Shown piece after piece: positions 1 to 22,811 of a stretch of 64,000 nt of DNA. The number at the start of each line of letters is the position of its first letter. Position 1 is the stretch's first letter. The notes below the pieces were generated by a model. The model was not told the origin of the DNA, made no database searches, and was given only the letters and a program-made list of their open reading frames with translations. The stretch covers positions 1-64,000 of the IMG/VR virus record IMGVR_UViG_3300018891_000001, one strand, 5' to 3'. The position numbers and the translations under genes were made by a program.

Positions 1-167
1 TCTTGTAAATCATAATCATCTAACTTATTATATCTTCTTCGCTGTTCCTTTTCTAAAACCCCCTTCAATTGCGGAATTAAAACATTAAGCACATTAAATA
101 CTGTTTCGTTCGATTCATCATCTGTAAAGTGTTTTCTAATTTCAATCTTGTTTCTCCATATCGCCAT
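1..167 (-). CDS. Hypothetical protein, partial (runs off left edge)
   Basis: ATG at 167 with upstream GAAGGAGA; frame MAIWRNKIEIRKHF... stays open to position 1; not in ORF track. Confidence 0.6.
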   Translation of the reverse strand, partial: MAIWRNKIEIRKHFTDDESNETVFNVLNVLIPQLKGVLEKEQRRRYNKLDDYDLQ

Positions 168-4517: not shown

Positions 4518-4931
4518 TTACAAAGTCACCAAACACCCCGGAGGGGGGATTAATAACTTAATCCTAATAATTTTTTCATTTGTTGCTGCAATTCTAATTT
4601 CCCTTCTAGATAAGCCCTTTTTTTTCATTTCTTTAATCAAGAGTAATAAATGACGAGGGGGCATATGTTGTATCGCTAAAATATCTATATATTCAATAAT
4701 CGCATGAGCATCCATATTCAAATCAGATAAATATGATTGTAATGTTTGTCCTTCTTCTGAATTCTTCATAATTTTATACGAGTACTTAAAAGTATATGTA
4801 TGCACCCAAAATAACTCATGATTGTGAGAAATATGTTCCTGAATAATCGGTTCCTCCCGAAGATCGTACTTAGTAGCAACAATACAACTTGGTCGCTTTT
4901 CAACATATTATCCAATAATTAAATCTCTCAT
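4518..4931 (-). pseudogene. Hypothetical gene with premature TAA at codon 8 (4908-4910)
   Basis: RBS GAAAGGTGG plus ATG 4931 is in frame with ORF 4518..4805; a single stop interrupts it. Confidence 0.45.
4527..4547 (-). promoter_or_regulatory. Hairpin motif copy 1 (putative phage-RNAP promoter)
   Basis: + strand CACC AAAC ACCCC GGA GGGGG; upstream of ATG 4502. Confidence 0.55.
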
Positions 4932-4992
4932 ATATACATCCACCTTTCAAAAAAATATGTTATACATCTAGATAGAATGAAGCCGCAGGCTA

Positions 4993-6861
4993 TTATCCTG
5001 CGGCAATGGTTTTTTCCTTTTCTGATCTTTTTCGAAGCAATCTTTCAAATGCTAAAGTATTGACATCTTTTCCTCTATAAGAAGACTCAATGCCACCCGT
5101 TAAAATTTCTTTTGCCATTTCTGATTTCTTAAACAGTAACTGAATCATGTGTTCATCATATGATTCACTCATGATATAGTAGTAAACCGTAATATTGGCA
5201 TGTGGGTTTCCTGTTCGGTCAATTCGACCATTTCGCTGTTCAAGCTCAGTAGCGGTATATGGCAAATCAAAGTGGATCATATAATTAGCCACTTGCAGAT
5301 TTAACCCTGTAGAACCTGCTCGAGTAGAAATAAAAATTTTAGTGTACGGATCTTCTCGGAATTTTTGAACAGCATACTCTTTCTCTCGATCTGACATTTG
5401 ACCTGTATAGAGAACAGAATGAGTCAGCCGTTCATAAATCATGCGAGCCATACGTTCATATTCAGTAAAAATAACAATTTTAGAAGATGGCTCATCGTGA
5501 AAAACTTGTTTGACAAACTCCTGCAATTGATCCAACTTAGGCGACTTCCGAATATCTTTTTCGGATAATCCTAACTCTTGAATGATTGACTTAGACATTG
5601 GTGATGCTTCTGGATGCACTAAAAGTTCTGGGGAATCACTGTTTTCAATTAAGAAAGTTTGCAAACCCTGAATAATACCATCGTAATATTCTTTTACTTG
5701 TTCTGGACTCATAAGCTGTCCATTAATCACTTTTGATCCCGTAACATTACGGGTTTCTTCTTTCAATTCTTCCATCTTTCTCAAGATATATTCCTGAATT
5801 TTCTCTTGAGCATCCGTCATCTCTAAGAATACGTGAGAATGCTGTACTTTTGGTAATTGCTGCTGAATTTCCGGCATTTCTTTGGTTCTGCGAATAAAAT
5901 GAGGTGCAATTCGATAATACAATTCCCCTAAATTAAAAGAGCCCGTAATACCATATCTTTTACTGTATTTGCAGTATCGTTCTCTAAAAAATTCCCACGG
6001 CCCCAGTATATGAGGATCTACAAAATGAAATAAGCTCCAAACTTCTTCTGCTTTCGATTGAACGGGTGTTGCTGTAGCAATAAAGCGATACGGAATATGC
6101 ATCAAATTATAGCAAGCTTTGGCATTTTGAGAAGGTTCAATATTTAAATATGAATCTGTTACGCCCGATTTAATCTTTTGGGCTTCATCTAATGCAACAA
6201 TATCAAAAGAAATTTTCTTAATCTCATTCATGTACTGAGAATTTCTTAATGTTTCGTAATTAACAACTAGATAACGAATATCTTGACGAGAAGCAAATCC
6301 TTTAATCAGTTTCTTTCTTTTTGTGGTACTACCATAAACCGCAATAGCGGATTCTCCTGTAAATTTCTCGATTTCTCTTGCCCATTGTCTCTTGAGTGAA
6401 TTTAAAGTAACAATCAATGCACGCTTGGCTTTTCCTCGATTAAAAAGAATTTGACAAGCTCCAATAATCTGAACCGTTTTTCCTAATCCAACACCATCAA
6501 ATACCGCAGCACGACCACGATCCGCTAAAAAATGAGAACCTACTTTTTGGTAAGGATACGGTTTGAGCCTCCAATTCTTAAAATCATCATCATTTTCCCA
6601 TGAAAGGTGTTTCTTTACTAATTCGTCATCAACTGCACAACCCTTTAAAATTTCCTGCAAAGGTTGATTCCAGATAATTTGATTATCAAATAATCGAAGA
6701 AGATCTCCAATGGATTCTTTCCCAAACATCCACTCTCCCGTGAGACGATTAAATGAACGACCAGCAATATTTCTAATTTTCTCTAATGTATATTCAAATG
6801 TCTCATGTGTATCTAAAATCCGAACATATAAATTTCCATACTGCTCTCGAACCTGAATCAA
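4993..6861 (-). CDS. SNF2-family (SF2) helicase/ATPase
   Basis: Walker A DGVGLGKT, Walker B LDEAQ, motif III TATP, and STRAGSTGLNLQ / EQRNGRIDRTG motifs V-VI. Confidence 0.92.
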   Translation of the reverse strand: MIQVREQYGNLYVRILDTHETFEYTLEKIRNIAGRSFNRLTGEWMFGKESIGDLLRLFDNQIIWNQPLQEILKGCAVDDELVKKHLSWENDDDFKNWRLKPYPYQKVGSHFLADRGRAAVFDGVGLGKTVQIIGACQILFNRGKAKRALIVTLNSLKRQWAREIEKFTGESAIAVYGSTTKRKKLIKGFASRQDIRYLVVNYETLRNSQYMNEIKKISFDIVALDEAQKIKSGVTDSYLNIEPSQNAKACYNLMHIPYRFIATATPVQSKAEEVWSLFHFVDPHILGPWEFFRERYCKYSKRYGITGSFNLGELYYRIAPHFIRRTKEMPEIQQQLPKVQHSHVFLEMTDAQEKIQEYILRKMEELKEETRNVTGSKVINGQLMSPEQVKEYYDGIIQGLQTFLIENSDSPELLVHPEASPMSKSIIQELGLSEKDIRKSPKLDQLQEFVKQVFHDEPSSKIVIFTEYERMARMIYERLTHSVLYTGQMSDREKEYAVQKFREDPYTKIFISTRAGSTGLNLQVANYMIHFDLPYTATELEQRNGRIDRTGNPHANITVYYYIMSESYDEHMIQLLFKKSEMAKEILTGGIESSYRGKDVNTLAFERLLRKRSEKEKTIAAG

Positions 6862-6994
6862 TTCATCTCACTCCTTTCTTTTCAAGTATGGAAAAACGAT
6901 AATTTAATTATACTACATTTTTTTGTATTTTCTCAATAAATGCTATGTTTTTCTTCTGTTTTCTTTTAAATTTTAAATATTTTTTAGAAGAAAT

Positions 6995-7172
6995 TTCGTT
7001 GGGGGGGATATAAAAAAATGGATTTTTTTCTTATTTTCTTGGGGGGAGAAATATAAAAAATAGATTTTCTCCTATTTGTCGTGGGGGCATAAAAATAAAA
7101 AATGCATTTTTCTTTATTTAGTATGAAAAACAAAAAATATGAACAATCGTAGGGGGAATTAGTTTAAAAAAA
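6995..7172. repeat. Three full ~41-bp imperfect direct repeats plus one partial copy (TCGTnGGGGG...ATAAAAAAT.GATTTT)
   Basis: Units start near 6995, 7036, 7077 and 7145 in an AT-rich intergenic region. Confidence 0.6.
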
Positions 7173-7174
7173 GA

Positions 7175-7200
7175 AAGACTACTCCCGAAGGAGTAGTCTT
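7175..7200 (-). terminator. Rho-independent terminator
   Basis: 11-bp stem AAGACTACTCC/GGAGTAGTCTT, UUCG loop on the minus strand, followed by a U-run. Confidence 0.85.
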
Positions 7201-7208
7201 GAAATGTA

Positions 7209-8198
7209 TTAACTCATTGGCCATGGAAGTTCATCTGCTGAAATTTCTCCTGTATGAAAAGGAGGTTGTGTAGCTACCGGTGTTTGATCCGGCGTTTGAA
7301 CCGGTGTAGGAGTTGCTGCCGCCGGAACAGGATTTGGAGTTCCCACATTTGGAAGTGTAAATGCAGGAACGAAGTTTCCTGTTTGCACTGGTGATGCTGA
7401 CACCGCAGGTAATCCTTGAGCTAAAGCCATTTCAAATGCTACATTCATTAAAGTCTGTTCATAAATATATGCTAATGCTTTGTATTCACTTGTAATGACT
7501 TGAATATATTCTGGAGCTGCAGCATTCGCATCAATAGCAAATGAACCATCTGGATAGATTTGATATTGATTGTTAACAACTGCAATCTTAGCACGCAACG
7601 TAGCTGGCTGATTTTGTTGTTGATATACACGATAAAAACGTGCTTTACGTGGTGCTAAATTTGCATTAAACTCCTGGAACATATCTGTGTTTCGGTCCCA
7701 ATATTTATCGGTACCCACAACATAATAGGAACCATCTCCTGTATTCGATGCCACAACTGTAAATGGAACACTCATCATGTGGAATGGAGATTGTTCATCT
7801 GTAATAGTGGCTACCACTGAAACAGAATTTTGTTGCGAAGTGACTGTTAAACGAACTTTTCCATTTGGCTCATAAATAGCACGTTTTCTGTTATCAGAAA
7901 GTGTTTCCACACCATGACCTTGCAAGAAATAATAATTTGCTGTCAAAATCAAATTATGCAATTCTGAAAAACGTGCAATATGAAGCTCTGAAAACGATTC
8001 AGCACCATCATAAAGACGAGTACCATTATCTTGAGCAACCGGATTATACTGCACAAACCATCCAGAAGTAAAAGATGAACTCATATCTGTAACGATAACT
8101 GGATATTTTGCTTTTCCGTTGCGAGTAACAGGATTTTTCACCTCTACTTTAATAGAAGATTGAATAACCTCTTTGATTTGATTTAACATACTTAACAT
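7209..8198 (-). CDS. Putative single-stranded DNA-binding protein
   Basis: Beta-rich body, Pro/Thr-rich linker and acidic-aromatic tail EISADELPW resembling SSB DDLPF tails; inference only. Confidence 0.45.
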   Translation of the reverse strand: MLSMLNQIKEVIQSSIKVEVKNPVTRNGKAKYPVIVTDMSSSFTSGWFVQYNPVAQDNGTRLYDGAESFSELHIARFSELHNLILTANYYFLQGHGVETLSDNRKRAIYEPNGKVRLTVTSQQNSVSVVATITDEQSPFHMMSVPFTVVASNTGDGSYYVVGTDKYWDRNTDMFQEFNANLAPRKARFYRVYQQQNQPATLRAKIAVVNNQYQIYPDGSFAIDANAAAPEYIQVITSEYKALAYIYEQTLMNVAFEMALAQGLPAVSASPVQTGNFVPAFTLPNVGTPNPVPAAATPTPVQTPDQTPVATQPPFHTGEISADELPWPMS

Positions 8199-8242
8199 TG
8201 TTCATTTCCCCTTTCTTAAATTTGAATATGAATAAAATGTTC

Positions 8243-8263
8243 CACCAAATTCGCCGGAGGCGA
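8243..8263 (-). promoter_or_regulatory. Hairpin motif copy 2
   Basis: CACC AAAT TCGCC GGA GGCGA; upstream of the SSB-like gene. Confidence 0.65.
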
Positions 8264-8728
8264 TTAGATATATCCTTTTTCTTTAAAAGAAAAGTAACAA
8301 TTATCTCCTATGATTAAATGATCAAGGAGTTCAATTCCCATTATCTGTCCACACTCAGCTAAACGCTTTGTTGCCTCGATATCCGTCTTCGAAGGATTAC
8401 AGTGACCACTAGGATGATTATGAGCACATATAAACGTATAAGCATTGACAAGCAACAAACGCTGAAAAACATCTCGTGGATTTACGATTGACGCATTCAT
8501 AGTACCTGTTGTAACTTCAAACACACCAACACAATCATTTGCTGTATTTAGTGCTACAACAATGAATTTCTCCTGTGGTGAAGATTCCAAATTAGAAAAT
8601 ACAGAACGAATAAAATTGTATGCTACTTCAGGACAAGATAACTTTTTATCCATAATCTCATACTTCTTACTGGACTCTTTCACCAACTGAACTTGATACT
8701 TTGTGACGATTTTCTTCATTCTCATCAC
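8264..8728 (-). CDS. radC: RadC-like JAB domain protein
   Basis: EKFIVVAL, HNHPSG..PS..D and LLDHLIIG motifs. Confidence 0.9.
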   Translation of the reverse strand: MMRMKKIVTKYQVQLVKESSKKYEIMDKKLSCPEVAYNFIRSVFSNLESSPQEKFIVVALNTANDCVGVFEVTTGTMNASIVNPRDVFQRLLLVNAYTFICAHNHPSGHCNPSKTDIEATKRLAECGQIMGIELLDHLIIGDNCYFSFKEKGYI

Positions 8729-8849
8729 CTCATTTAGAAAAATTTATAAAGAAAATCCCGCACTGCTAAAACAATAAACAGTAGCGGGATTAAATATAGC
8801 TGACCAGAAAGAACAAAGATGATAAACAAAAATACACAAATGCTATAAG

Positions 8850-9104
8850 TCATTTAGCAATCACTCTTTGTTTTAAAATCAGTCTTTCAACAATATGTAA
8901 TTCATCCTCTAGCATAACAACCTGCGACATCTTAAAAAGTGCAATATCAATATTTCCTTCTGTAATATCACATTCAATTTCCTTGTTTAATAACTCAATA
9001 GCATTTGTTAACATGATTTGACGAACTTCGATAGAAGAAGAAGATAAGGCCTCACGAAGTTCTTGTCTGGATGTTACGGATTTTATCTTTTGAATTAATG
9101 TCAT
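8850..9104 (-). CDS. Hypothetical protein, 84 aa
   Basis: ORF track; GAGGAGG RBS. Confidence 0.75.
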   Translation of the reverse strand: MTLIQKIKSVTSRQELREALSSSSIEVRQIMLTNAIELLNKEIECDITEGNIDIALFKMSQVVMLEDELHIVERLILKQRVIAK

Positions 9105-9132
9105 GTGCTAAATCCTCCTCTAATCATTATTT

Positions 9133-9153
9133 CACCAAACGCCCCGGAGGGGC
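9133..9153 (-). promoter_or_regulatory. Hairpin motif copy 3
   Basis: CACC AAAC GCCCC GGA GGGGC; upstream of ATG 9104. Confidence 0.65.
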
Positions 9154-9277
9154 TGCATACCAACACCGAAGGCGATGACCATAAAAAATATCTTTTCTAT
9201 TAATAAAAAATATTTTTTATGAAAATAAAAAATAAAAAAGACACCGAAGGTGTCTATATTGCTTCTCATCAAGCAAT

Positions 9278-9499
9278 TTAAAGCCTGCTTAGAGCACTAA
9301 AATTAGAACTCTTTTCATGAGTTGTTCCGGTTAACGATTGTAAACATGATTGAATATAAGTTGTGAGAACCTTTAAGTCTTTTGTTTTTACATTGGATAC
9401 TTCATATGAAATATCTTTTAAAGACACATTGATTTCTGGTGTATACTCATTTGAAGGAATACGTACTTCTACAGATCCTACATGAAATTTCATTTGCAT
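9278..9499 (-). CDS. Hypothetical protein
   Basis: ATG 9499 after AAGGGGG RBS. Confidence 0.7.
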   Translation of the reverse strand: MQMKFHVGSVEVRIPSNEYTPEINVSLKDISYEVSNVKTKDLKVLTTYIQSCLQSLTGTTHEKSSNFSALSRL

Positions 9500-9529
9500 T
9501 TTGATTTCCCCCTTAATGTAATTACTTTT

Positions 9530-9550
9530 CACCAAATCCGCCGGAGGCGG
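9530..9550 (-). promoter_or_regulatory. Hairpin motif copy 4
   Basis: CACC AAAT CCGCC GGA GGCGG; upstream of ATG 9499. Confidence 0.65.
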
Positions 9551-9578
9551 CTCCACTAACCAAAAGTTAGACGATCAT

Positions 9579-9680
9579 TTACATAAAATAAAAAATCAGA
9601 AAGGTTAATATACCGGAAAAACAAATCATTCCTATAATTTCTTCCCCTGAATACAATAAACCAGAATCTATATCTTTCAT
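9579..9680 (-). CDS. 33-aa hydrophobic peptide
   Basis: GAGGTG RBS; MKDIDSGLLYSGEEIIGMICFSGILTFLIFYFM; one predicted TM helix. Confidence 0.45.
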   Translation of the reverse strand: MKDIDSGLLYSGEEIIGMICFSGILTFLIFYFM

Positions 9681-9691
9681 AATCACACCTC

Positions 9692-9770
9692 AAATTATCA
9701 AATTATCCTCTTATCAAATTATCGAGAAAACCCTAATTATCGTTGAAATAACAGGGGTTTTCTCGATAAT
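9692..9770. repeat. Four 8-bp tandem units (AAATTATC) overlapping a perfect 16-bp inverted repeat
   Basis: Units at 9692, 9700, 9708 (CTCTTATC) and 9716; ATTATCGAGAAAACCC 9718-9733 / GGGTTTTCTCGATAAT 9755-9770. Confidence 0.75.
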
Positions 9771-9772
9771 AA

Positions 9773-10081
9773 TTAGACTAATAATAATTCTAACTGTTTA
9801 AGTTCCTCATTAATTAAACGGTGAATAAGTCGTAAAGTTGTTACCCTTTCTTCATCACCATCCAAGTTGTTAATATCTATATCAGAATAATAAAATGAGA
9901 ATTCTTTAATATAACCGATTATGCGCTGAGACTTTTCGGTTTGAGCCCAGTTATTTAATACCGGATAATCAATTTTCTTTAGTAGGTATAAATACTGAAC
10001 AATATGAACAACCTCAAAATGATCGCCAGACTCCAATTCATCTGGCAAATGCCTCATAGCTTCGCAAACCGCTAATTTCAT
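9773..10081 (-). CDS. Hypothetical protein, 102 aa
   Basis: ORF track; GAAGGAGGAG RBS. Confidence 0.75.
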   Translation of the reverse strand: MKLAVCEAMRHLPDELESGDHFEVVHIVQYLYLLKKIDYPVLNNWAQTEKSQRIIGYIKEFSFYYSDIDINNLDGDEERVTTLRLIHRLINEELKQLELLLV

Positions 10082-10095
10082 ATAAACTCCTCCTT

Positions 10096-10317
10096 CTACA
10101 CAGCATGTTGTTGCAGCTTCGCCATAATATCTGCTTCTAATGATTCACGATCATGAATGTAAGTAGTAAAAGCCTGTTGCAAATCTTTAGCAGATGGCTT
10201 CTGATGTAAAACAATCTCTCTCATTGTGCCATTGTTATATTTAACACGAGCGATAATTGCAAAAGTATTATCTGGTTGACGCTGAATATAAAAACGAACT
10301 ACTTTCATAGAAATCAC
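10096..10317 (-). CDS. Hypothetical protein, ~70 aa
   Basis: ORF track; AAAGGAG RBS. Confidence 0.7.
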   Translation of the reverse strand: MISMKVVRFYIQRQPDNTFAIIARVKYNNGTMREIVLHQKPSAKDLQQAFTTYIHDRESLEADIMAKLQQHAV

Positions 10318-10646
10318 TCCTTTGGTTTAGCAATTGGAATTAAGAGAATTTGTCCCTCACGGATTTGAGAAGAATCTTCAATACGATTGACTTTTTTAGT
10401 CAGTGTCACAAAATGACGGGTATCCCATCCCCAAGGGACAAATGTATTCATATCTTGTACAACAGTAAAAAGAGTATCGCCCTTTTGCATGCGATACTCT
10501 ATATACTCAATCTGATAATCATTCATTTGTTCTATATGGAATACCAACATAAATACCATTAAAATCGATAAGAAAAAGAGACTGATGTTTTTCCATTTCA
10601 GTCTCTTACAAAATGATTTTTTTCTACGTATAGTGCTTAGATTCAT
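10314..10646 (-). CDS. Membrane-anchored LysM protein (YneA-like architecture)
   Basis: Basic N-terminus, TM helix, LysM motif YRMQKGDTL...IREGQILLIP. Confidence 0.8.
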   Translation of the reverse strand: MNLSTIRRKKSFCKRLKWKNISLFFLSILMVFMLVFHIEQMNDYQIEYIEYRMQKGDTLFTVVQDMNTFVPWGWDTRHFVTLTKKVNRIEDSSQIREGQILLIPIAKPKE

Positions 10647-10661
10647 GTTATCCTTCCTTTC

Positions 10662-10682
10662 CACGAAATTTGCCGGAGGCTA
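10662..10682 (-). promoter_or_regulatory. Hairpin motif copy 5
   Basis: CACG AAAT TTGCC GGA GGCTA; upstream of the LysM gene. Confidence 0.55.
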
Positions 10683-11195
10683 TTACGTTAATGCAACTTC
10701 ATACAAATCTTTTTTACCTTTCAAGAGATATTCTGCTGAAGAATGAATAGCCACTAAACGATGTGGCTGATCACATGTAGTTTGGTTTTGCAGATGCACT
10801 TTATAAGACAAAACACGTTCACTGTCCGTAAGGACAGCATAAATTTGTTGCCATAAATCTACATGTTGTGGAGGCTCTCCTTTCGTAGTGAGCCATCCTT
10901 GACGAACCCAGTTGTACATATGTTTATTTAGACCGGTACTGACTTGTACAACAGATGTATAAATATGTACAAACACAGGTTTTTCTTTCTTCAATTGCAA
11001 GAGTCCATGTAAAATAGCCTGAAGCGTCATACGAGTTGGTGTCGTTCCTTTCGCATAACCACCAATGGTCTTTGTATAATGCTGACCTTGAATGCAGCAA
11101 TGAAGATGAGAACACCAGCCACCGTTTCCTTCTTGGTCTGTTGTGCCGGCTACCCAAAGATTCACTTTTAATTTATCAAACTGAGCTTTACTCAT
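10683..11195 (-). CDS. RNase HI-fold protein lacking the catalytic carboxylates
   Basis: RNase HI-like segments (GGW, T..RM.L.A, YTS, G...W...GW.T..G.P..H.DLWQ); D10/E48/D70 equivalents appear as A/T/S. Confidence 0.75.
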   Translation of the reverse strand: MSKAQFDKLKVNLWVAGTTDQEGNGGWCSHLHCCIQGQHYTKTIGGYAKGTTPTRMTLQAILHGLLQLKKEKPVFVHIYTSVVQVSTGLNKHMYNWVRQGWLTTKGEPPQHVDLWQQIYAVLTDSERVLSYKVHLQNQTTCDQPHRLVAIHSSAEYLLKGKKDLYEVALT

Positions 11196-11262
11196 AGATT
11201 TCACTCCTTCATTTGAATAACAAAAAAAGCCCACACCAGAAGATGTGGACTTTATTTATGAT

Positions 11263-11538
11263 TCAAATTTTTTCATCAATGAATTTATGAATATTGCGCA
11301 AACCGTTTTGACCATAAAGAATACGAATCTTCTTATAATCTACATGACGTGGAGCGGTTTTCTTGTTATGTATTGGAATCCCACGACGATGACAATTCTT
11401 TTCAATCACATTAAGAAGGATTTTTGTGCGCTCGTATTGACCTTGATTGTAAGTACATTGAGCTTGATGAAGAATATGAAGTAAATCATCTGGCAAGAAA
11501 GATACTCGCAAACGAAATAAACGATCAGATAAATTCAT
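11263..11538 (-). CDS. Hypothetical protein, 91 aa
   Basis: ORF track; AAGGAGGAG RBS. Confidence 0.65.
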   Translation of the reverse strand: MNLSDRLFRLRVSFLPDDLLHILHQAQCTYNQGQYERTKILLNVIEKNCHRRGIPIHNKKTAPRHVDYKKIRILYGQNGLRNIHKFIDEKI

Positions 11539-11602
11539 TTCTTACTCTCCTCCTTAGACAAAATAAAAAAAGCCATCCTAAAAAGGACGGCTTTCTTAAT
11601 GC

Positions 11603-12148
11603 CTATATATAAAACGTATGAATATAACGATTAAAACGTTTGGCGTACTCAATACAGTTGGCAGTTCCGCCAGGTGTTCCATCCCAAAATGCGATCACAC
11701 CTTGAACAGAATCTACCATATATTCATTTCGAATTTGCAGTTTGTAATTGCTATGTACGCCAACAGGTGTATGGATATCTCGCATGTACAATGGTGTCTT
11801 ATCCACATACGTCACCAAGTCTGCTAACTCTAACATACGAGAATACCAATACAAAATTTCTGGATTTCTCCATATTTTTGGTTGCTCTTTATACGGTACA
11901 GCAACAATATTCTTAATATGAGGATAACGTTTCTTGAGTTGCTGTACCGTAAAAAAAGCAATTTGATCAAAGCCAATCGCTCCGCCAGACATAAATTTTG
12001 TTGCTCCCTGTTGAATTTTTTCTTCTAAAATAGGAAGCAACAAATTTCTCACAGTATACACTCCTTCATTCTTCCAGGGATCATTCCAATCAAACCCTGG
12101 AATTTTATTAGGGCGATGACCTGTGAAACACCAAGCATCTACAGACAT
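11603..12148 (-). CDS. YspA/DUF1273-like SLOG family protein
   Basis: CFTGHRP, SGGAIGFD, RNEYMVD and FWDG..GGT..CIEYA motifs. Confidence 0.85.
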   Translation of the reverse strand: MSVDAWCFTGHRPNKIPGFDWNDPWKNEGVYTVRNLLLPILEEKIQQGATKFMSGGAIGFDQIAFFTVQQLKKRYPHIKNIVAVPYKEQPKIWRNPEILYWYSRMLELADLVTYVDKTPLYMRDIHTPVGVHSNYKLQIRNEYMVDSVQGVIAFWDGTPGGTANCIEYAKRFNRYIHTFYI

Positions 12149-12175
12149 GCAAAATCCTCCTTGAGAGAATATTTT

Positions 12176-12196
12176 CACCGAACCCGCCGGAGGCGG
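12176..12196 (-). promoter_or_regulatory. Hairpin motif copy 6
   Basis: CACC GAAC CCGCC GGA GGCGG; upstream of the SLOG gene. Confidence 0.65.
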
Positions 12197-12205
12197 TCCC
12201 ACTGG

Positions 12206-12388
12206 CTAAAAGCTAGTGGGAATTTCAATAAATGATTGAAGATAATTATCACAGCCGGATTCGCAATACTTGCAATTTGGACATTCCACTGTAAAATCAT
12301 CATGTAAATCTACATTTATGTGGAATTCCGTTTCGCATTCAGGACATCTAAGATACAACATATTATTCAAAATCCTCCATATACTCAA
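12206..12388 (-). CDS. Zn-ribbon protein
   Basis: CPEC...CPNC. Confidence 0.7.
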   Translation of the reverse strand: MSIWRILNNMLYLRCPECETEFHINVDLHDDFTVECPNCKYCESGCDNYLQSFIEIPTSF

Positions 12389-12404
12389 GAATATAAACCA
12401 CTCC

Positions 12405-12626
12405 TTATTTCATCCTCAATAAAGCTGTATAAGCATCACTAAAACGCTTATATTTTTCTTTACTATAATCATCTTCATGGATAGCATACCAAGTTTGACT
12501 TTCTTGGTGATAACACAATCTGCCAATATAGTAATACCCACAACGAGAACGAAGAACCAATAACTCACTTATTTGACCATCAAGTAAACGATTCTCCATT
12601 GTTGGAACAGAAGGAATTAAACCCAT
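12405..12626 (-). CDS. Hypothetical protein
   Basis: ORF track; GAAAGGGTGG RBS before ATG 12626. Confidence 0.7.
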   Translation of the reverse strand: MGLIPSVPTMENRLLDGQISELLVLRSRCGYYYIGRLCYHQESQTWYAIHEDDYSKEKYKRFSDAYTALLRMK

Positions 12627-12670
12627 ACTATCCACCCTTTCTAATATAATAAATTACAAAAAAATTTTTT

Positions 12671-12691
12671 CACCAAATTCGCCGGAGGCGA
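12671..12691 (-). promoter_or_regulatory. Hairpin motif copy 7
   Basis: CACC AAAT TCGCC GGA GGCGA; upstream of ATG 12626. Confidence 0.65.
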
Positions 12692-13172
12692 TAGCCTTTT
12701 TTTACTTTCTAAATAAAGAACACCTTGTTCGATAAAAAATAAAAAAATACGAACACTTTGTGACAATTTTGTGAACTTTTTTGAACAAGGTAGAATTTCC
12801 CCAAGTTTTGGCGGTATATAAAGAAAGTGAACACCTTTCTTAGAAAGCAAGGGGTTGCTGTCAAAGTTATCTGACAACTGTCACAATTTTGGAATTCTAT
12901 ACCAGAAATTAAAATAAGGGTATTCCAAAATAGCACACTTTCAGATACATAGTACACATTCTTTTGGTGGCTTTGCGAAGCACACCAACAAGTACACCAA
13001 CCGATTTCTAGAAAGGCATACCCAAAACCAAGCTAATGGGGCTGGAAGACAGCGGGGACGTATGCCCTTTTCGAAAGGACCACCCTAACGGCAAATTTTT
13101 AGGAAACATTGGGGGATTGCTACGCATATCATCATGCATATCATATTCTCCGCCGCCCGCCGATAGGGGTTC

Positions 13173-13193
13173 CAACAAATCTGCCGGAGGCGA
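13173..13193 (-). promoter_or_regulatory. Hairpin motif copy 8
   Basis: CAAC AAAT CTGCC GGA GGCGA; no clear gene immediately downstream. Confidence 0.5.
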
Positions 13194-13578
13194 TTGGTCG
13201 GTGCTATGTAAACCACGATTAGTCGGTGCTACGTAAAAGAACCAAAACTCGCCCTCCATCTCTGTGGCTCGATAGAGCCAAGAGTGATCTTGCCGAAGGC
13301 TAACAATAAAACAAGATAAGATGAAGCGTACAAAGGTGTTATCCATCCTCATTCTCATTCCCTCCAGAAGTCAGTATTGTCAGGGTGTAACCTTATACTT
13401 CAAGCCTATAGATAGGACAAGTCACTATCCACTAGCTCCATCCACATAAGACACCCGACACCAAAGATGGTACGAGGGAAGAGCATTCAGATGGTCATGA
13501 TGAACGCTTCCATAGGGTGATTGTGCTCCACTGACACGCTCACCCCAAAAAGCGCATCAGTTTCATCGCACAAAAACA

Positions 13579-13779
13579 TTAGTCAGTAATAAATGCGACA
13601 GAAACTGCATCAGCATTCTGAATGTCCTCCCAAGATATATTTGGTCGGACTTCAGAACACAACACAATTTCAACTACAAATACTGACATGGCTCCTCGAT
13701 CCGACCAGTCCAAAATCAAATGAACTGGCCAAATCAAAGAAGCAAATGCCAGTTCACAAATTATTTTCATGATGAACAC
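13579..13779 (-). CDS. Possible small protein
   Basis: ORF track; GAGGTG RBS before ATG 13773. Confidence 0.4.
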   Translation of the reverse strand: MFIMKIICELAFASLIWPVHLILDWSDRGAMSVFVVEIVLCSEVRPNISWEDIQNADAVSVAFITD

Positions 13780-14163
13780 CTCAACTGATTAATTTGTGAA
13801 CCGTTATTTAACTAGAGTGGCCGTCCTCTAGTGGAGTGGTTCTTCTCCATTCCTATTCGCCTATCCCCAAATAGGAAATCCCCCTGTTAGGGCAGGTCGC
13901 ATACTATGCACAGCTTGTTTTTCTCGCTATCGTGCATATTTAGCCAGGGATATTTTCAGCCTGTTAAATAGCTACTAGGACACTCTTATGCCATTCCCTA
14001 AGAACCTTGCCTAAGCAATGAATACAGGGAATAGAGAGGAATCCGCTCGCAAAAATAAAACACATCACCTCCTTTCTGATGTGAACCACACCAATCAAAA
14101 CAAGAAACACCTCTTGCACTCATTGCTAGGGTTCAAGCCATTCTTAATAAAAAAAAGAAAAAA

Positions 14164-14184
14164 GAGGAGGGCAAAACGCCCTCC
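14164..14184 (-). terminator. Rho-independent terminator of the RNA polymerase gene
   Basis: AGGAGGGC/GCCCTCCT stem followed by a long U-run on the minus strand, immediately after the stop at 14188. Confidence 0.8.
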
Positions 14185-14187
14185 TAT

Positions 14188-17100
14188 TCATGAATAGCGA
14201 GTAACTGATTCCAAATAGAACGTCAATGACTTCTTATTGACTTGAAAATCCTTTACTTTTGCAACAAATCTAGTTGCACCAGTAAAGAAAGTAACATACT
14301 CTGGATAAATCGAAGCTACACGTTGCTTCTTGACATACACTTCATGACGAAGATTGCCAAGTTCATCAGCTTGAACCATAACTGCAATATGATTAGCCCA
14401 ATTTTGAATCATATTAGCAACCATCTCTGGCGTATAACCCGGAGTAAAGTTACCAATGTTCACTTTCGTAACCTCAAGTTGATCAAAACGAGTTACTTGA
14501 GGTTCTTTTAATTTTAAGTGTTCTGTTCCAGACACCTTACGTAAAGCTGCAACAAATTGATGTTTAGCTACAACCCAAGGGAAACTTAACCCACGAGCAG
14601 GCTCATCCACCGTTGCGCCACGCTTCGAAGCTGAAACAGAATAAGTCATCTGATAAGCAACCAAGCCAATATAAGCTGGATCAAATTGTTCTGAAAGAGC
14701 CATAAACTCTGCTTGACACTTTTCAGTAATAAAGTTGAGCGAATCATCTAGATCACGCTTCAACTGATTAATATATTGTTCTTTGGCATAATCACTTGCA
14801 AAAGAAATAAACTCAAGTTGAGACATTTCGGTATCAAACTTACGATACGCATTCGAAATAGCCGTATTGTACATAGATTTAATCATGCGTACATTACTTA
14901 AAACGGCCATTTGTTCCACATGAGACTGTGGCACTTCAACCACAGTGGAAATCGCACTGAGAAGATTATTCTCTGCATATTCACTTCTCAACTTCTTAAT
15001 ATCAGCAATAAATTCTTGTTCTTCCCATTTCAACATATATTCATGAACACGAGAAAGAACAGAATCATTCTGAATACCATTTGACTTCCCTTTTAAATGA
15101 GCGAACCAAGATGGACTTGCCCAAACATAACGACGTAATTTCTTATTGTACGTTGCAACTTCTGCTGGTGGATTTTCAATGAAAGAAAGTTCTTCTTTCA
15201 ATGCTTCTTCATATGCACCACCATGTTTTGCACGGTCAATTTCCCAAGACTGAACCCATGCAAGTAAATCAATAAGTTCTTGGAGTTCATTCACTCTCTT
15301 AATAATCGCTTTTGCTGCTGACATACTGCCAGCTTCATAATGAGAACGACCCTTATACCACAAAGCACGAACCGCATCAGCAAGTTTCGTAGCATAATCC
15401 GTTAACTCACCAATACGGTTTGGCTTTAACGTTTCTGCTACATACTCTAAAGATATTTCATACATCTTTAACTGTAACTCACGAGTATATTGACTCTTTG
15501 TAAAAGTAAATTTATACTTAGACATATCCACTGTACCCTTAAATGGGCAACCATTGTCGAAGAGAATCTGCCCATTCTCTTCCCAATAGTGGATATCTAA
15601 GAAAGCAGGAGCAGATTTGCATGCTTCTTCAACCGCTGTGACCAATTCTGGTTGAGTCATGCACAGTGATGTATCACCATCACAATCTGCTCCACCTTGA
15701 GAAATAGTATTAAAGTCATGGCACGACATAATAATCATGCCATCAAAAGCATCTTTCTTCATATAGCGTGAATAAGCACGTGCTTCAAGAACACGAGATT
15801 GCCCCATAGTCATCTGCGGATTACGAGCAACAGCTAGTTTGCCAACATACACCACATGACCATCTTTCTCTAACATAAAGCACGTACCAGGTTTAATTCC
15901 TTTATTCGGATTCACAAAAAGTTTTCCATTTTTACGAATCTCTTGATCCGTGCCACGCAACTTATACGCATCTAAAATCGCATACGGATCCATAATGATA
16001 AAACGATAATTCGCTTCAACCGGAATTAAACCCGATTTCCACTCTTTAATCAACTCTTGTAATAAAGAAAGAGCCTTTTCTTTCAAGAAAACATCTTGGT
16101 AAGAGTTCGGCGCATAATGTAAATAAAACGACAACAAAGAAACAAGAGTAGAATCTAACAATTCATCTTGTTCCTCTTCTGAATACTCTTCAAGTTGCAA
16201 CAAACGATCATGCCCTAAATACTCCTTCATCAATTCTACATCATGAAGTAACAATTTTGCACGATCCAAATGAGGTTTTAAAAGTTTAATCATAGTATCG
16301 GCACTCAATTTCATACCATGTATAAATTGATACGGTAAACTCACATATCTCTTTTTAAAGCGCATTGGTGCTCCAAAAAGAGCCACACGGAACTGCAATT
16401 GAATATCTTCAATTACATCTTCCAACGTATCTGTAGAAGCTTTGAATGAAGACATTGGAATCACAATATCTTCTTCAAAATACTTCTCTAAATCTGGAAT
16501 ATACACAGCATTGCCTTTTACAAAACCGTTAAACAAACGAACAACACCATTCTGAAAATGACGGCCAAACTCCGCTTCCGCTAAAGTCTTAATACGATTA
16601 TTGAAATACATTTGACCATCACCGGCTACTTGTTCAATAGGATGATCAGCCGCATCAAACACACGACTTTTCTTTGTATCTTTGCCAAAAGCTTTAAACT
16701 TACCTTGTGATACTTCTGAATAAACATCTTCGACAATACGAAGAGATACATTTCCGCCGAGAATAGAAATATCACCATTCTCGTGACGTACTACTTCTTT
16801 TCCAAAACGAATAAAGTTCGACTTAACACTATTCGAAAGCGTTAAGCCAAAACGTTTCATAGCTTTGACATAATCTAATTCATAAACAATCTCACCATTT
16901 TTATCTTGGCCCTTCACCTTCGCAAAGGCTAAAGGATTCATACCAAGAATATTCAATACATCCACAGGATGAATAATATGCTCTGCCACACCAACTACTT
17001 GGACTTGACGTTCTTGAGAAGGAGAACGCAAAGCATAACGAACCATACGTTCTACACCTTCATAATCAATATAACTCATTCCTAATCGAATAATATTCAT

Positions 17101-17667
17101 CGCCTTTGTAATATCCTCTTCTTTTAACGGTTTTAAATCAATGAAGAAAACGTGAGGCAATACATATGCATACACCTCACGTTCTATAACTTCACCATCA
17201 ACTATCTTTCTAACTGTCACCATACGTGGACCATCAAAAATAAATGGAGACAACATCTCTGCTGCATAAGAACCAGAAATCTCTTTATATCCTGATTTCT
17301 TATCTTCACCAACGAAGAAAGAATCAGAATAATTGCGAGTAGAAATATAACGACCATCAACAAATTCGATCGTATCTAAGTCTGCTTGTGCTACAATAAC
17401 ACGAATATTCTTGATACGACGAAGTTTCTTAGGAATTGGATGAGATTCCAAGAACTTCTTAAATACATGAGCTTGTTGTGGTGCAACACCTGCCAACTCT
17501 ACAGGATTCTCTAATACCTCCACTACATTTGCACCACTCGCAACCGCTTCCACAACTTTAGAAAAGTTTTTCGTACCAATTGCCGTTAAAGGCGAAAAAG
17601 AAGCCAAGCGTTCAACCACTTGGCTCACAGACTGAATAGGATTTAATACATTTTTCACATTGTTCAT
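14188..17667 (-). CDS. Single-chain two-barrel RNA polymerase (SPbeta YonO / RNAi RdRP-like)
   Basis: Catalytic GGADCDGD (DxDGD); ARNPQMT.GQ.RVLEA (RdRP RxP motif); AGDGQ and FVKG motifs; N-terminal HhH-like segment. Confidence 0.85.
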   Translation of the reverse strand: MNNVKNVLNPIQSVSQVVERLASFSPLTAIGTKNFSKVVEAVASGANVVEVLENPVELAGVAPQQAHVFKKFLESHPIPKKLRRIKNIRVIVAQADLDTIEFVDGRYISTRNYSDSFFVGEDKKSGYKEISGSYAAEMLSPFIFDGPRMVTVRKIVDGEVIEREVYAYVLPHVFFIDLKPLKEEDITKAMNIIRLGMSYIDYEGVERMVRYALRSPSQERQVQVVGVAEHIIHPVDVLNILGMNPLAFAKVKGQDKNGEIVYELDYVKAMKRFGLTLSNSVKSNFIRFGKEVVRHENGDISILGGNVSLRIVEDVYSEVSQGKFKAFGKDTKKSRVFDAADHPIEQVAGDGQMYFNNRIKTLAEAEFGRHFQNGVVRLFNGFVKGNAVYIPDLEKYFEEDIVIPMSSFKASTDTLEDVIEDIQLQFRVALFGAPMRFKKRYVSLPYQFIHGMKLSADTMIKLLKPHLDRAKLLLHDVELMKEYLGHDRLLQLEEYSEEEQDELLDSTLVSLLSFYLHYAPNSYQDVFLKEKALSLLQELIKEWKSGLIPVEANYRFIIMDPYAILDAYKLRGTDQEIRKNGKLFVNPNKGIKPGTCFMLEKDGHVVYVGKLAVARNPQMTMGQSRVLEARAYSRYMKKDAFDGMIIMSCHDFNTISQGGADCDGDTSLCMTQPELVTAVEEACKSAPAFLDIHYWEENGQILFDNGCPFKGTVDMSKYKFTFTKSQYTRELQLKMYEISLEYVAETLKPNRIGELTDYATKLADAVRALWYKGRSHYEAGSMSAAKAIIKRVNELQELIDLLAWVQSWEIDRAKHGGAYEEALKEELSFIENPPAEVATYNKKLRRYVWASPSWFAHLKGKSNGIQNDSVLSRVHEYMLKWEEQEFIADIKKLRSEYAENNLLSAISTVVEVPQSHVEQMAVLSNVRMIKSMYNTAISNAYRKFDTEMSQLEFISFASDYAKEQYINQLKRDLDDSLNFITEKCQAEFMALSEQFDPAYIGLVAYQMTYSVSASKRGATVDEPARGLSFPWVVAKHQFVAALRKVSGTEHLKLKEPQVTRFDQLEVTKVNIGNFTPGYTPEMVANMIQNWANHIAVMVQADELGNLRHEVYVKKQRVASIYPEYVTFFTGATRFVAKVKDFQVNKKSLTFYLESVTRYS

Positions 17668-19496: not shown

Positions 19497-20131
19497 TAGG
19501 CCACGATAATGGAATAAGGAAGCACAAATCCAAAAGCTGTAACAAAGATGCCAAGATAAGAAAGACCTAAAAGAACAAACGGAAAGATAGCGACTGTAAC
19601 AAGAGAAGTAGTAGCCGCTACAACAAGCTGCTTCACACTTGGTTTCTTCTTTTTCTTCTTTGCTAATAAGTAAGAAACGGCTAAAGCAGCCAGAGAAATA
19701 CCAGCACCTACTGCTACCGCAGAAACAGTAGAAGCTGTGACTGCACCGGCTACAAGAACAGAACCGGAAGCAAAAGCAATGGTATCACCCTGAGATACAA
19801 AGAAATCCTTCAATTTCTTAGCAGCACGTTTAATTAAAGACCAAAGACTAGTAGATGACTCCTTTACTGCTTGTTTAAAGCCCTTTTCCTTTGCCTTATT
19901 AAGAGCTTCTTTAGCTTTCTCCTTTGCAACCTTTGTTGCCTTACCTGCTTTCTCTTTCACATTTTTCATAACCATTTCCCCTTTCTTGCTAATTGTGTTT
20001 ACAGTAGATTGATGGTTTTGGTGTTTAGAACAATAAAAAGCACCAGGTATCAATACTGGTGTGTCACATAAAGCGCATGTCACCCCCTTATTCTCCTTCT
20101 CATTTCCTACTTGGATGATGTTGTTTTGCAT
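19496..20131 (-). CDS. Membrane protein with N-terminal Cys/His cluster and Lys-rich helix
   Basis: ATG 20131 after AAGGAGG; CALC...CSKH; several C-terminal hydrophobic helices. Confidence 0.75.
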   Translation of the reverse strand: MQNNIIQVGNEKENKGVTCALCDTPVLIPGAFYCSKHQNHQSTVNTISKKGEMVMKNVKEKAGKATKVAKEKAKEALNKAKEKGFKQAVKESSTSLWSLIKRAAKKLKDFFVSQGDTIAFASGSVLVAGAVTASTVSAVAVGAGISLAALAVSYLLAKKKKKKPSVKQLVVAATTSLVTVAIFPFVLLGLSYLGIFVTAFGFVLPYSIIVA

Positions 20132-21681: not shown

Positions 21682-22344
21682 GTGGAACTCATAGCACAGT
21701 ATATCGAAATTGATGAACCCAGAAGAGTAGATTTGCGGTTTTTAGATGTTCCTCCGATGTGGAGAGCCTTTCATGAAAGTACAGAACATAAAATCAGTAT
21801 ATTTGCAGGAAGGCAAATGGGGAAAACATATAACTTAGCTTTACGGGCTGTTCGCTCTATGTATGATTGTGTCGTGTATGTGCGTGATCATTATATGGTA
21901 AAGAGTATGGCCAACTTGATTGCTGATCTCAGTCCAGAATCTCCTGTCATAAGGATGTGTTCGAATTATGCTAGTGTTATATTGGGTACCGGGAGACACA
22001 TTGACATTTATGCCTTTTCTGCACCTAACATCCGTGGAAAACGATTTATGATGAAAGAAGTTTTGATAGATGAGTTCGATTGCGAAAGGTTTGAAATATT
22101 GTTAGAAAGAGTAAAGTTTGAGCTCGATCGTGCGATACATGTAGTATGTGTAGGAACTCCAAGTATAAGTCCTGACACACCGGGAAAACGATGGTTTAAG
22201 GAATCAGGAACAAAATATTATATTGATATGATTCATGTTCCAGAAGATATGGAGCAATGGGCACATGTATATGAATATCGTCCGAGTGCTCTCCAGAATG
22301 TTATTGATCGTCTTCCACCATTAGAGTATGATTATTCTTTTTAA
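21682..22344 (+). CDS. Stand-alone terminase-like ATPase domain
   Basis: AGRQMGKT (Walker A), VLIDE (Walker B) and VGTP (coupling motif); no nuclease domain. Confidence 0.65.
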   Translation: MELIAQYIEIDEPRRVDLRFLDVPPMWRAFHESTEHKISIFAGRQMGKTYNLALRAVRSMYDCVVYVRDHYMVKSMANLIADLSPESPVIRMCSNYASVILGTGRHIDIYAFSAPNIRGKRFMMKEVLIDEFDCERFEILLERVKFELDRAIHVVCVGTPSISPDTPGKRWFKESGTKYYIDMIHVPEDMEQWAHVYEYRPSALQNVIDRLPPLEYDYSF

Positions 22345-22736: not shown

Positions 22737-22811
22737 TGCCTAGTAGCTCAGTGGTAGAGCAATCGGCTGTTAACCGATCGGTCGCAGGTTCGAATCCTGC
22801 CTAGGCAGCCA
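22737..22811 (+). tRNA. tRNA-Asn (GTT)
   Basis: Acceptor stem TGCCTAG/CTAGGCA; anticodon stem ATCGG/CCGAT with loop CT-GTT-AA; T arm GCAGG-TTCGAAT-CCTGC; encoded CCA. Confidence 0.97.

Follow-up and report, generated by a model that had tools for sequence, protein, structure and literature searches.

A circular 215.8-kb phage genome, from a phage of a spore-forming Firmicute whose host is not known, carries at least 15 copies of a 24-base element. The element consists of a short G+C hairpin with a fixed GGA loop on the template strand, followed by a fixed start region, and the copies lie just before the replication genes. We consider these elements most likely to be promoters for the phage's own single-chain "two-barrel" RNA polymerase, a promoter design so far known only for the unrelated polymerase of coliphage N4. 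This reading is inferred from sequence, without RNA ends or biochemistry, and we give it a probability of about 0.6.

The window analysed here was a 64,000-nt stretch (positions 1 to 64,000 of IMG/VR record IMGVR_UViG_3300018891_000001). A sequence-only reading had described eight N4-type hairpin motifs in this window and had suggested that a YonO-type polymerase reads them. The motif pattern gave exactly 8 matches, all on the + strand (Table 1), whereas shuffled sequences gave a mean of 0.55 and a maximum of 4, and 0 of 100 shuffles reached 8. A weight-matrix scan found no other copy on either strand of the window. Because the last 61 nt of the contig equal window positions 1-61, the contig is circular, and seven more copies were found beyond the left end of the window in the same leftward gene block (in stretches labelled here L052, at 3299, 7731 and 8199; L126, at 20330; L127, at 13904; L128, at 16106; and L134, at 18319). 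All copies are co-oriented with this one block, which starts just after the polymerase gene, and, as the sequence-only reading stated, none lies upstream of the polymerase gene. Searches tuned to the strict consensus found none in the structural arm, and listing every CCTCCGG core there found none with the conserved tail. In a search of Rfam 15 at gathering score, only a group I intron and a tRNA were found in the window and L052.

Table 1. Coordinates of the hairpin elements and neighbouring features in the window. Elements are written on the template strand (+) and serve - strand genes.
Feature	Position (strand)	Pattern match	Stem	Context
Element copy 1	13170..13193 (+)	13173	CTGCC/GGCGA, one T-G pair	First copy downstream of the polymerase gene; precedes a 43-aa ORF
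Element copy 2	12668..12691 (+)	12671	TCGCC/GGCGA	48 nt before the ATG of a 73-aa gene
Element copy 3	12173..12196 (+)	12176	CCGCC/GGCGG	31 nt before the ATG of a 181-aa gene (phrog_289, GTP-binding domain)
Element copy 4	10659..10682 (+)	10662	Weak, one T-T mismatch	Abuts the stop codon of the RNase H-like gene; 19 nt before the ATG of a 110-aa gene whose L118 orthologue also carries the element
Element copy 5	9527..9550 (+)	9530	CCGCC/GGCGG	34 nt before the ATG of a 73-aa gene
Element copy 6	9130..9153 (+)	9133	GCCCC/GGGGC	About 90 nt downstream of a canonical terminator; 32 nt before the ATG of an 84-aa gene
Element copy 7	8240..8263 (+)	8243	TCGCC/GGCGA	Abuts the stop codon of the upstream gene; 48 nt before the ATG of a 329-aa gene whose L118 orthologue (65% identical) also carries the element
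Element copy 8	4524..4547 (+)	4527	CCCC/GGGG (4 bp)	28 nt before the ATG of an 81-aa gene that heads the run containing the DHH phosphoesterase gene
Single-chain two-barrel RNA polymerase gene	14188..17667 (-)			1159 aa; proposed reader of the elements
Canonical intrinsic terminator	14165..14185 (-)		9 bp, T run	Directly after the polymerase stop codon
Low-coding spacer	13359..14164 (-)			About 0.8 kb between the polymerase terminator and the first element; a 114-aa ORF (13352-13008) runs across that element; same gap in L118 and L119; in SPbeta a comparable gap lies further downstream, between yonN and yonK, not directly after yonO
Canonical terminator	9239..9255 (-)		7 bp, T run	Just upstream of copy 6, giving the order terminator, element, gene
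Sigma-70-type match	6907..6936 (-)			TTGAGA-18-TATAAT (11 of 12), the best in the block; before the SNF2 helicase gene, which has no hairpin element; an equivalent site precedes the L118 helicase gene

The placement of the elements was closely tied to gene starts. Each of the 11 copies measured lies 19-48 nt before an SD plus ATG, and the other four copies likewise lie just upstream of an SD and start codon, which leaves no room for a sigma-70 promoter. All eight copies in the window showed this spacing, and not seven as in the sequence-only reading. The genes served include those for PIF1 helicase, SSB, DnaG primase, the pol III beta clamp and an AAA ATPase. Ordinary long-stem, T-run terminators occurred separately in the same block.

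Both the structure and the sequence of the elements are constrained. Over all 15 copies, 93.3% of the cells in the 5-bp stem paired on the template strand, 15 cells carried compensatory changes on both sides, and the covariation score was 0.497 compared with 0.161 +/- 0.047 in shuffles, with 0 of 500 shuffles reaching it. In contrast, the GGA loop and the two C-G pairs next to it (CC-GGA-GG) were invariant, and a block of about 11 nt beyond the stem hardly varied. The conserved part is longer than the sequence-only reading described: it reads TT(T/C)CAC-C-AAAT on the template strand and ATTT-G-GTG(A/G)AA after the stem in gene sense. The template base after the AAA(T/C) spacer was C in 11 of 15 copies (G in 3 and T in 1), and the next three positions (GTG in gene sense) were better conserved. 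The choice of strand was only weakly supported, with three T-G pairs on the template strand against one G-U on the sense strand and pairing of 93.3% against 90.7%. Nearest-neighbour folding did not separate the DNA and RNA readings, and the z-scores were modest.

Two relatives, L118 and L119, whose polymerases are 62-63% identical, carry eight copies each of a concerted variant before orthologous genes. In this variant, a 5-bp co-varying stem (GCCCT, GCCAC and GCACT; 100% paired) encloses a GGTA or GGCA template loop closed by T-A instead of C-G, and the spacer is one base longer. This is the pattern expected when promoters co-evolve with their polymerase. In L118, one element followed by about 150 nt and a canonical terminator forms a neat small transcription unit, although the T-rich tails make four of the eight L118 copies pass a lenient terminator pattern. 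The two most distant relatives with the polymerase (L120 and L003, 31-34% identity) showed no such element within 10 kb.

The 1159-aa protein is a two-barrel enzyme (Pfam RdRP PF05183, E 1e-8, above its cut-off; phrog_8308), and all close homologues carry the same family. Its catalytic DxDGD site is intact, with the motif GGADCDGDT at residue 661, and D661, D663, G664 and D665 were invariant in 9 homologues. The protein gave a weak profile match to SPbeta YonO (hhalign probability 45.8%, E 2e-4, over 398 columns with the catalytic motifs aligned), whereas tblastn against all GenBank phages found nothing, even at E of 1 or less. It was the only polymerase candidate, with no T7-like and no second two-barrel polymerase, in the 94% of the genome that was read (202 of 215.8 kb). 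Two-barrel enzymes of this Pfam family (crAss phi14:2 gp66 and QDE-1) prefer single-stranded DNA templates, transcribing single-stranded but not duplex DNA, which makes this reader plausible.

The geometry of the elements matches the published description of the N4 early promoters P1-P3, which have a template-strand hairpin with a 5-bp stem, conserved loop and stem-top bases with a freely co-varying lower stem, a 5'-GGA-3' loop (-10G, -11G, -12A) closed by C-G, and a 4-nt A-rich spacer before a start opposite C, a start with which the sequence here is compatible (PMC4496689; PMC13037366). The template loops GGA and GNNA are the classes of stable DNA mini-hairpins. N4 polymerase binds GCGGAGC, and the RNA versions of such hairpins are far less stable (PMC13037366). 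However, the contacted -8 G of N4 is a C in all 15 copies, and a longer conserved start region is present here. Moreover, the N4 enzyme is T7-like, giant and virion-packaged and serves three early promoters, whereas here the only polymerase found is encoded among non-structural genes and the elements serve replication genes.

In SPbeta, the gene order is likewise polymerase, terminator and then a promoter further downstream, with a long non-coding stretch on the way. Interestingly, the only hairpin in 50 kb with a stem of at least 5 bp and a sense loop T(N)CC is TGGAGA-TTCC-TCTCCA, which has a GGAA template loop and is followed by GTGTGAA. This hairpin is covered by the forward primer of the published P_YonO primer-extension amplicon, which was used to map the only known YonO start site, although the exact start could not be placed within the 243-nt amplicon. 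At the same place Goe14 has a different G+C hairpin. YonO has 839 aa and drives one late operon rather than many middle genes. Among other phage polymerases, the single-chain two-barrel enzymes of Thermus phage P23-45 (gp96 and gp64) use linear AT-rich or GC-rich motifs and the early starts of crAss-like phi14:2 (gp66) have no common motif, and no hairpin is described for either. The non-virion polymerase of Bacillus jumbo phage AR9 recognizes its promoter on the template strand, but it is a multisubunit enzyme with a linear uracil-containing motif and no hairpin.

On the basis of these findings, we propose a mechanism modelled on N4 for the replication and recombination ('middle') genes. In negatively supercoiled or transiently single-stranded DNA, the 13-nt inverted repeat would extrude, and the template-strand arm would form a compact mini-hairpin with two invariant C-G pairs, a sheared G-A pair and a stacked central G in the GGA loop. 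The polymerase would recognize this loop and stem top, use the 4-5 nt A/T spacer as a ruler and start at a G of ATTT-G-GTG(A/G)AA, 5-6 nt past the stem, giving leaders of 19-48 nt that carry the SD. The polymerase gene itself has no such element and ends in an ordinary terminator, so it is presumably made first by host polymerase; the host-then-phage polymerase cascade put forward in the sequence-only reading is plausible.

Other explanations appear unlikely but differ in their support. The element could act in RNA, with the hairpin plus AUUUGGUGAAA on the mRNA serving as a processing or stabilizer site, or as a sequence-specific pause or termination signal for the phage polymerase, between cistrons of long transcripts. 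The hairpin forms equally well in RNA (-7 to -13 kcal/mol) and often abuts the upstream stop codon, and pairing on the sense strand and the terminator-like copies in relatives, both noted above, are also compatible with this view. However, the RNA loops UCC, UACC and UGCC belong to no stable RNA loop class, and at three sites the sense strand has C-A mismatches where the template has T-G. Furthermore, the first copy follows a strong terminator and about 1 kb of non-coding DNA, where an inter-cistronic site has no purpose, the small L118 unit makes sense only if the element is a start, and no other promoter fits in the short distance before each gene. About as doubtful is that the elements are promoters or operators read as duplex DNA by the phage polymerase, or by host polymerase with a phage factor, the inverted repeat reflecting a dimeric protein. 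The placement is promoter-like, the P23-45 promoters are linear, the block encodes several HTH and MerR-type proteins, and short hairpins extrude poorly in general (PMC4496689). Nevertheless, the outer three stem pairs change by compensatory substitution (GC/CG, UA/CG/GC/AU), preserving pairing and not base identity, which is the opposite of what a sequence-reading dimer would select. In addition, the repeat has an odd, asymmetric 3-nt centre and a long one-sided conserved flank, and the relatives change the loop length from 3 to 4 nt while keeping the G...A ends.

It is improbable that the elements are hairpin promoters read by another enzyme, such as an N4- or T7-type polymerase or a polymerase domain hidden in a virion protein. 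The likeness to N4 promoters is very close, P23-45 hides a polymerase in its tape-measure protein, and five giant virion proteins (1400, 2301, 2145, 1654 and 1669 aa) have little or no annotation and no RNA polymerase family assignment. However, outside an unread 13.5 kb (home coordinates 115,274-128,794), no Pfam or PHROG polymerase hit appeared in any listed gene and no second [AGS]DxDxD motif occurred in any ORF of at least 250 aa. The two giant ORFs tested (2301 and 1400 aa) gave no PDB sequence match, and the elements begin right after the two-barrel polymerase gene and change together with it in the relatives. Least likely, the elements are ordinary intrinsic terminators for host polymerase. 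They are G+C hairpins followed by some T residues in intergenic DNA, but the home copies have only three T residues after a 4-5 bp stem, and the loop is invariant and the sequence beyond the T residues is conserved, whereas a terminator needs structure only. Only one home copy was picked up by the terminator scan, on the wrong strand, and true terminators occur elsewhere in the block.

More tentatively, template-strand DNA mini-hairpins with G...A loops (GGA, GGYA, GGAA) followed by a GTG-type start may be the general promoter form of YonO-type single-chain two-barrel polymerases, including P_YonO of SPbeta, which its authors left undefined. If so, two unrelated polymerase folds, T7-like in N4 and two-barrel here, converged on the same extruded-hairpin solution to starting transcription without a sigma factor or a DNA-melting subunit.

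The minimal two-barrel polymerases are thought to resemble the ancestor of all cellular RNA polymerases, and how they find their start sites and open DNA is unknown. A set of at least 15 natural promoters, together with a concerted variant set in a relative whose enzyme is 63% identical, gives ready-made material for specificity-swap experiments, and the system would also offer a compact orthogonal transcription system for Gram-positive hosts. The elements suggest a melting-free mechanism, entry through an extruded hairpin, that fits the preference of these enzymes for single-stranded templates, and this would be a second, independent origin of N4-style hairpin promoters.

To verify the eight N4-type hairpin motifs that the sequence-only reading had claimed beside a two-barrel RNA polymerase, we searched the window with the proposed pattern. 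The pattern matched exactly eight times, with all matches on the + strand, and each of the eight claimed copies was recovered, whereas shuffled sequences gave 0.55 matches on average. A weight matrix built from the eight copies found nothing else on either strand of the window. Because the genes between 1 and about 20,130 run on the - strand, the + strand is their template. On the template strand each copy reads TT(T/C)CAC-C-AAA(T/C), a 5-nt arm, GGA, and then the complementary arm; in gene sense it reads arm-TCC-arm-(A/G)TTT-G-GTG(A/G)AA.

The IMG/VR contig 3300018891_000001 is 215,870 bp long, and its last 61 nt repeat the first 61 nt of the window, indicating that the genome is closed and complete, either circular or circularly permuted. 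At least ten other public contigs hold identical proteins, and three of them are about 215.9 kb long. The leftward gene block continues across the junction, where it holds three more canonical copies and four copies with slightly diverged start regions. This brings the total to at least 15 copies, all co-oriented with the genes and spread from about 169 kb through the junction to 13.2 kb, the stretch that begins just downstream of the polymerase gene. The genes directly behind a copy include those for PIF1 helicase, SSB, DnaG primase, the pol III beta clamp, an AAA ATPase and several small proteins. No copy was found in the structural arm, and none lies upstream of the polymerase gene. Exact and degenerate scans of IMG/VR found only chance single hits outside the home phage, although the degenerate scan missed the four diverged home copies. 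The coordinates of these and other features are listed in the table.

Coordinates of hairpin elements and other features noted in the home phage and its relatives (L052, L121, L126, L127, L128, L134, L135 and L137 are stretches of the home phage genome; L118 and L119, syntenic relatives; L120 and L003, distant relatives)
Location	Strand	Feature
Window 1-61 and L052:11062-11122		61-nt terminal overlap
L052:3299, 7731 and 8199		Canonical copies of the hairpin element
L126:20330; L127:13904; L128:16106; L134:18319		Copies with slightly diverged start regions
Window 13195-13240	- (sense)	Two direct copies of TAGCACCGAC(T/C)AATCG immediately upstream of the first hairpin element, inside an otherwise low-coding stretch of about 1 kb after the polymerase gene
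Window 14185-14165		Ordinary terminator right after the polymerase stop
Window 22737-22811	+	tRNA-Asn (GTT) gene in the region between the two arms
Window 23975-25162; also L118, L119, L120	+	Alp7A/ParM-like actin (partition-type) gene, conserved next to the polymerase region in all relatives
Window 29143-30129		ORF upstream of the intron, hits terminase large subunit
Window 30259-30543	+	Group I intron (Rfam RF00028, 86.9 bits) between two ORFs
Window 30826-31656		ORF downstream of the intron
L126:16319-18678		ThiF (E1-like) and Prok-E2_D genes close together in the leftward block, with two small genes between them
L137:3623-9874; L128:12521-14983; L121:15931-16812		Split DNA pol III alpha and split UvrD helicase; LAGLIDADG and HNH endonuclease genes interrupting the pol III alpha pieces; another LAGLIDADG gene in the tail module
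L135:12619-12804		Small acid-soluble spore protein (SASP) gene
L118:20021-20191		Hairpin element, about 150 nt with no called gene, then a canonical terminator
L003:13343-13486		Four to five tandem 35-nt repeats containing GGTCTTTTnGGTGTTTCAAG, directly after the polymerase gene
L120:17650-17680, 20070-20100, 21790-21810		GCTAACGC (GCGTTAGC on the template strand), recurring three times after terminators

The SASP gene points to a spore-forming Firmicute host. The genome is rich in mobile endonucleases, and the terminase gene may be split around the group I intron. The conserved actin gene suggests plasmid-like segregation or a phage cytoskeleton, and the ThiF and Prok-E2_D genes may form a ubiquitin-like conjugation module.

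We next examined the constraint on the element. Over the 15 copies, the GGA loop and the two adjacent C-G pairs never change, whereas the three outer pairs change by compensation (GC and CG at the third pair, and GC, UA, CG and AU at the fifth). On the template strand, 93.3% of cells pair and 15 cells carry double changes. The covariation score was 0.497, against 0.161 ± 0.047 in shuffles, and 0 of 500 shuffles reached it; slid registers dropped to 43–69% paired. Beyond the stem, a block of about 11 nt is also conserved. Both structure and sequence are therefore under selection, which points to recognition by a protein and not to a purely thermodynamic signal.

The placement of the elements is promoter-like. 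Each of the 11 copies measured lies 19–48 nt before an ATG with a good SD, and the four later copies likewise lie just upstream of an SD and start codon, a distance too short for a sigma-70 promoter. Ordinary terminators with stems of 7–14 bp and T runs are also present in the block, one of them about 90 nt upstream of the copy at 9133, giving the order terminator, element, gene. The SNF2 helicase gene, which has no element, has instead the best sigma-70-type match of the block, and an equivalent site precedes the helicase gene of L118, indicating that two signal classes coexist. The unit in L118 in which an element is followed by a canonical terminator looks like a small transcription unit and may be a small RNA gene driven by the phage polymerase. 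Rfam has nothing at these sites.

With respect to the strand that forms the hairpin, the template loops are GGA in the home phage and GGTA or GGCA in L118 and L119. Of the 64 possible triloops, only GNA forms the very stable DNA mini-hairpin, and GNNA tetraloops form it too, both with a sheared G-A pair. N4 polymerase binds the mini-hairpin GCGGAGC, and the RNA versions of such hairpins are far less stable (PMC13037366); the RNA-sense loops UCC, UACC and UGCC are not special. Pairing leaned the same way only slightly (93.3% on the template against 90.7% on the sense strand), and the wobble asymmetry, three T-G pairs on the template against one G-U on the sense strand, is too small to carry weight. 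Neither nearest-neighbor folding energies nor z-scores discriminated between the strands.

The polymerase has only nine homologues among 5.8 billion proteins. Among 185,579 species genomes, only Alicyclobacillus shizuokensis has a match, and no matches were found in PDB sequences or GenBank phages. In L118 and L119 the polymerases are 62–63% identical to that of the home phage. The home weight matrix found nothing in either genome, but when all short hairpins were listed, eight copies each of a variant were found downstream of the polymerase gene. The variant has a 5-bp stem (GCCCT, GCCAC or GCACT with their complements), a sense loop T(A/G)CC and then (A/G)TTTnnGTGAAA, with 100% pairing and five compensatory cells. 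Orthologous genes carry the element in both genomes: the 329-aa and 348-aa proteins are 65% identical, and the 110-aa and 114-aa proteins are 40% identical. Position is kept, while loop length and spacer change together across a whole genome, as would be expected of promoters that co-evolve with their polymerase. In contrast, the relatives at 31–34% identity, L120 and L003 (A. shizuokensis), showed no such element and no recurring hairpin within 10 kb. The word that recurs in L120 is a GNNA mini-hairpin on the template strand, but its spacing to downstream features is not consistent. The tandem repeats of L003 share a TTTTGGTG-like word but are not this element; they could be a different promoter array or iterons.

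The N4 review (PMC4496689) describes a template hairpin centered at -11, a loop of -10G, -11G and -12A, -9C and -8G, four A residues acting as a ruler, a start eight nt beyond -8, and extrusion by supercoiling that is stabilized by SSB. In sequence, the elements here are compatible with this geometry except that -8 is C, and they add a conserved start block.

As for the enzyme, the 1159-aa protein passes Pfam RdRP and carries GGADCDGDT with invariant aspartates. It aligns weakly to YonO with the catalytic motifs in register, and its model is of moderate confidence. To test for another polymerase, we walked the genome and read 1-115,273 and 128,795-215,870, which is 93.7% of it; a metagenome scan meant to close the remaining 115,274-128,794 found nothing, leaving that stretch unread. 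The right arm holds terminase, portal, capsid, sheath, a tape-measure-like protein, giant tail proteins and fibers, and the remainder holds nucleotide and replication genes. Within the part read, no gene hit a polymerase family and no other long ORF has the catalytic signature, although five giant virion proteins and 13.5 kb remain open. Enzymes of this family (crAss phi14:2 gp66, QDE-1) transcribe single-stranded DNA but not duplex DNA, and a pre-opened hairpin entry site is therefore mechanistically attractive.

Literature searches found no paper describing hairpin promoters for YonO-type enzymes, and the promoter of YonO itself was left undefined, with its start site mapped upstream of yonK. 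Interestingly, in the SPbeta record the gap between yonN and yonK contains TGGAGA-TTCC-TCTCCA followed by GTGTGAA, a 6-bp stem with a GGAA template loop. The published forward primer for the P_YonO sequencing fragment covers exactly this hairpin, and the reverse primer lies 243 nt downstream. It is the only hairpin in 50 kb, on either strand, with a stem of at least 5 bp and a T(N)CC sense loop. Because the start coordinate (2225998) could not be mapped to the phage record or placed within the amplicon, this remains a lead. Phage phi3T keeps the hairpin. Goe14 has a different G+C hairpin at the same place, followed by GTGGATGAA, with a 'skipping-rope' ncRNA annotated just upstream, and SPbetaL4 has a deletion of about 200 nt there.

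As described above, the observation of the sequence-only reading was confirmed and enlarged. Everything beyond the sequence anatomy is inference, and we place the probability of the main reading at about 0.6. In this most likely reading, the elements are a family of template-strand hairpin promoters for a YonO-type polymerase, which works like the N4 early promoters but is not a member of that system.
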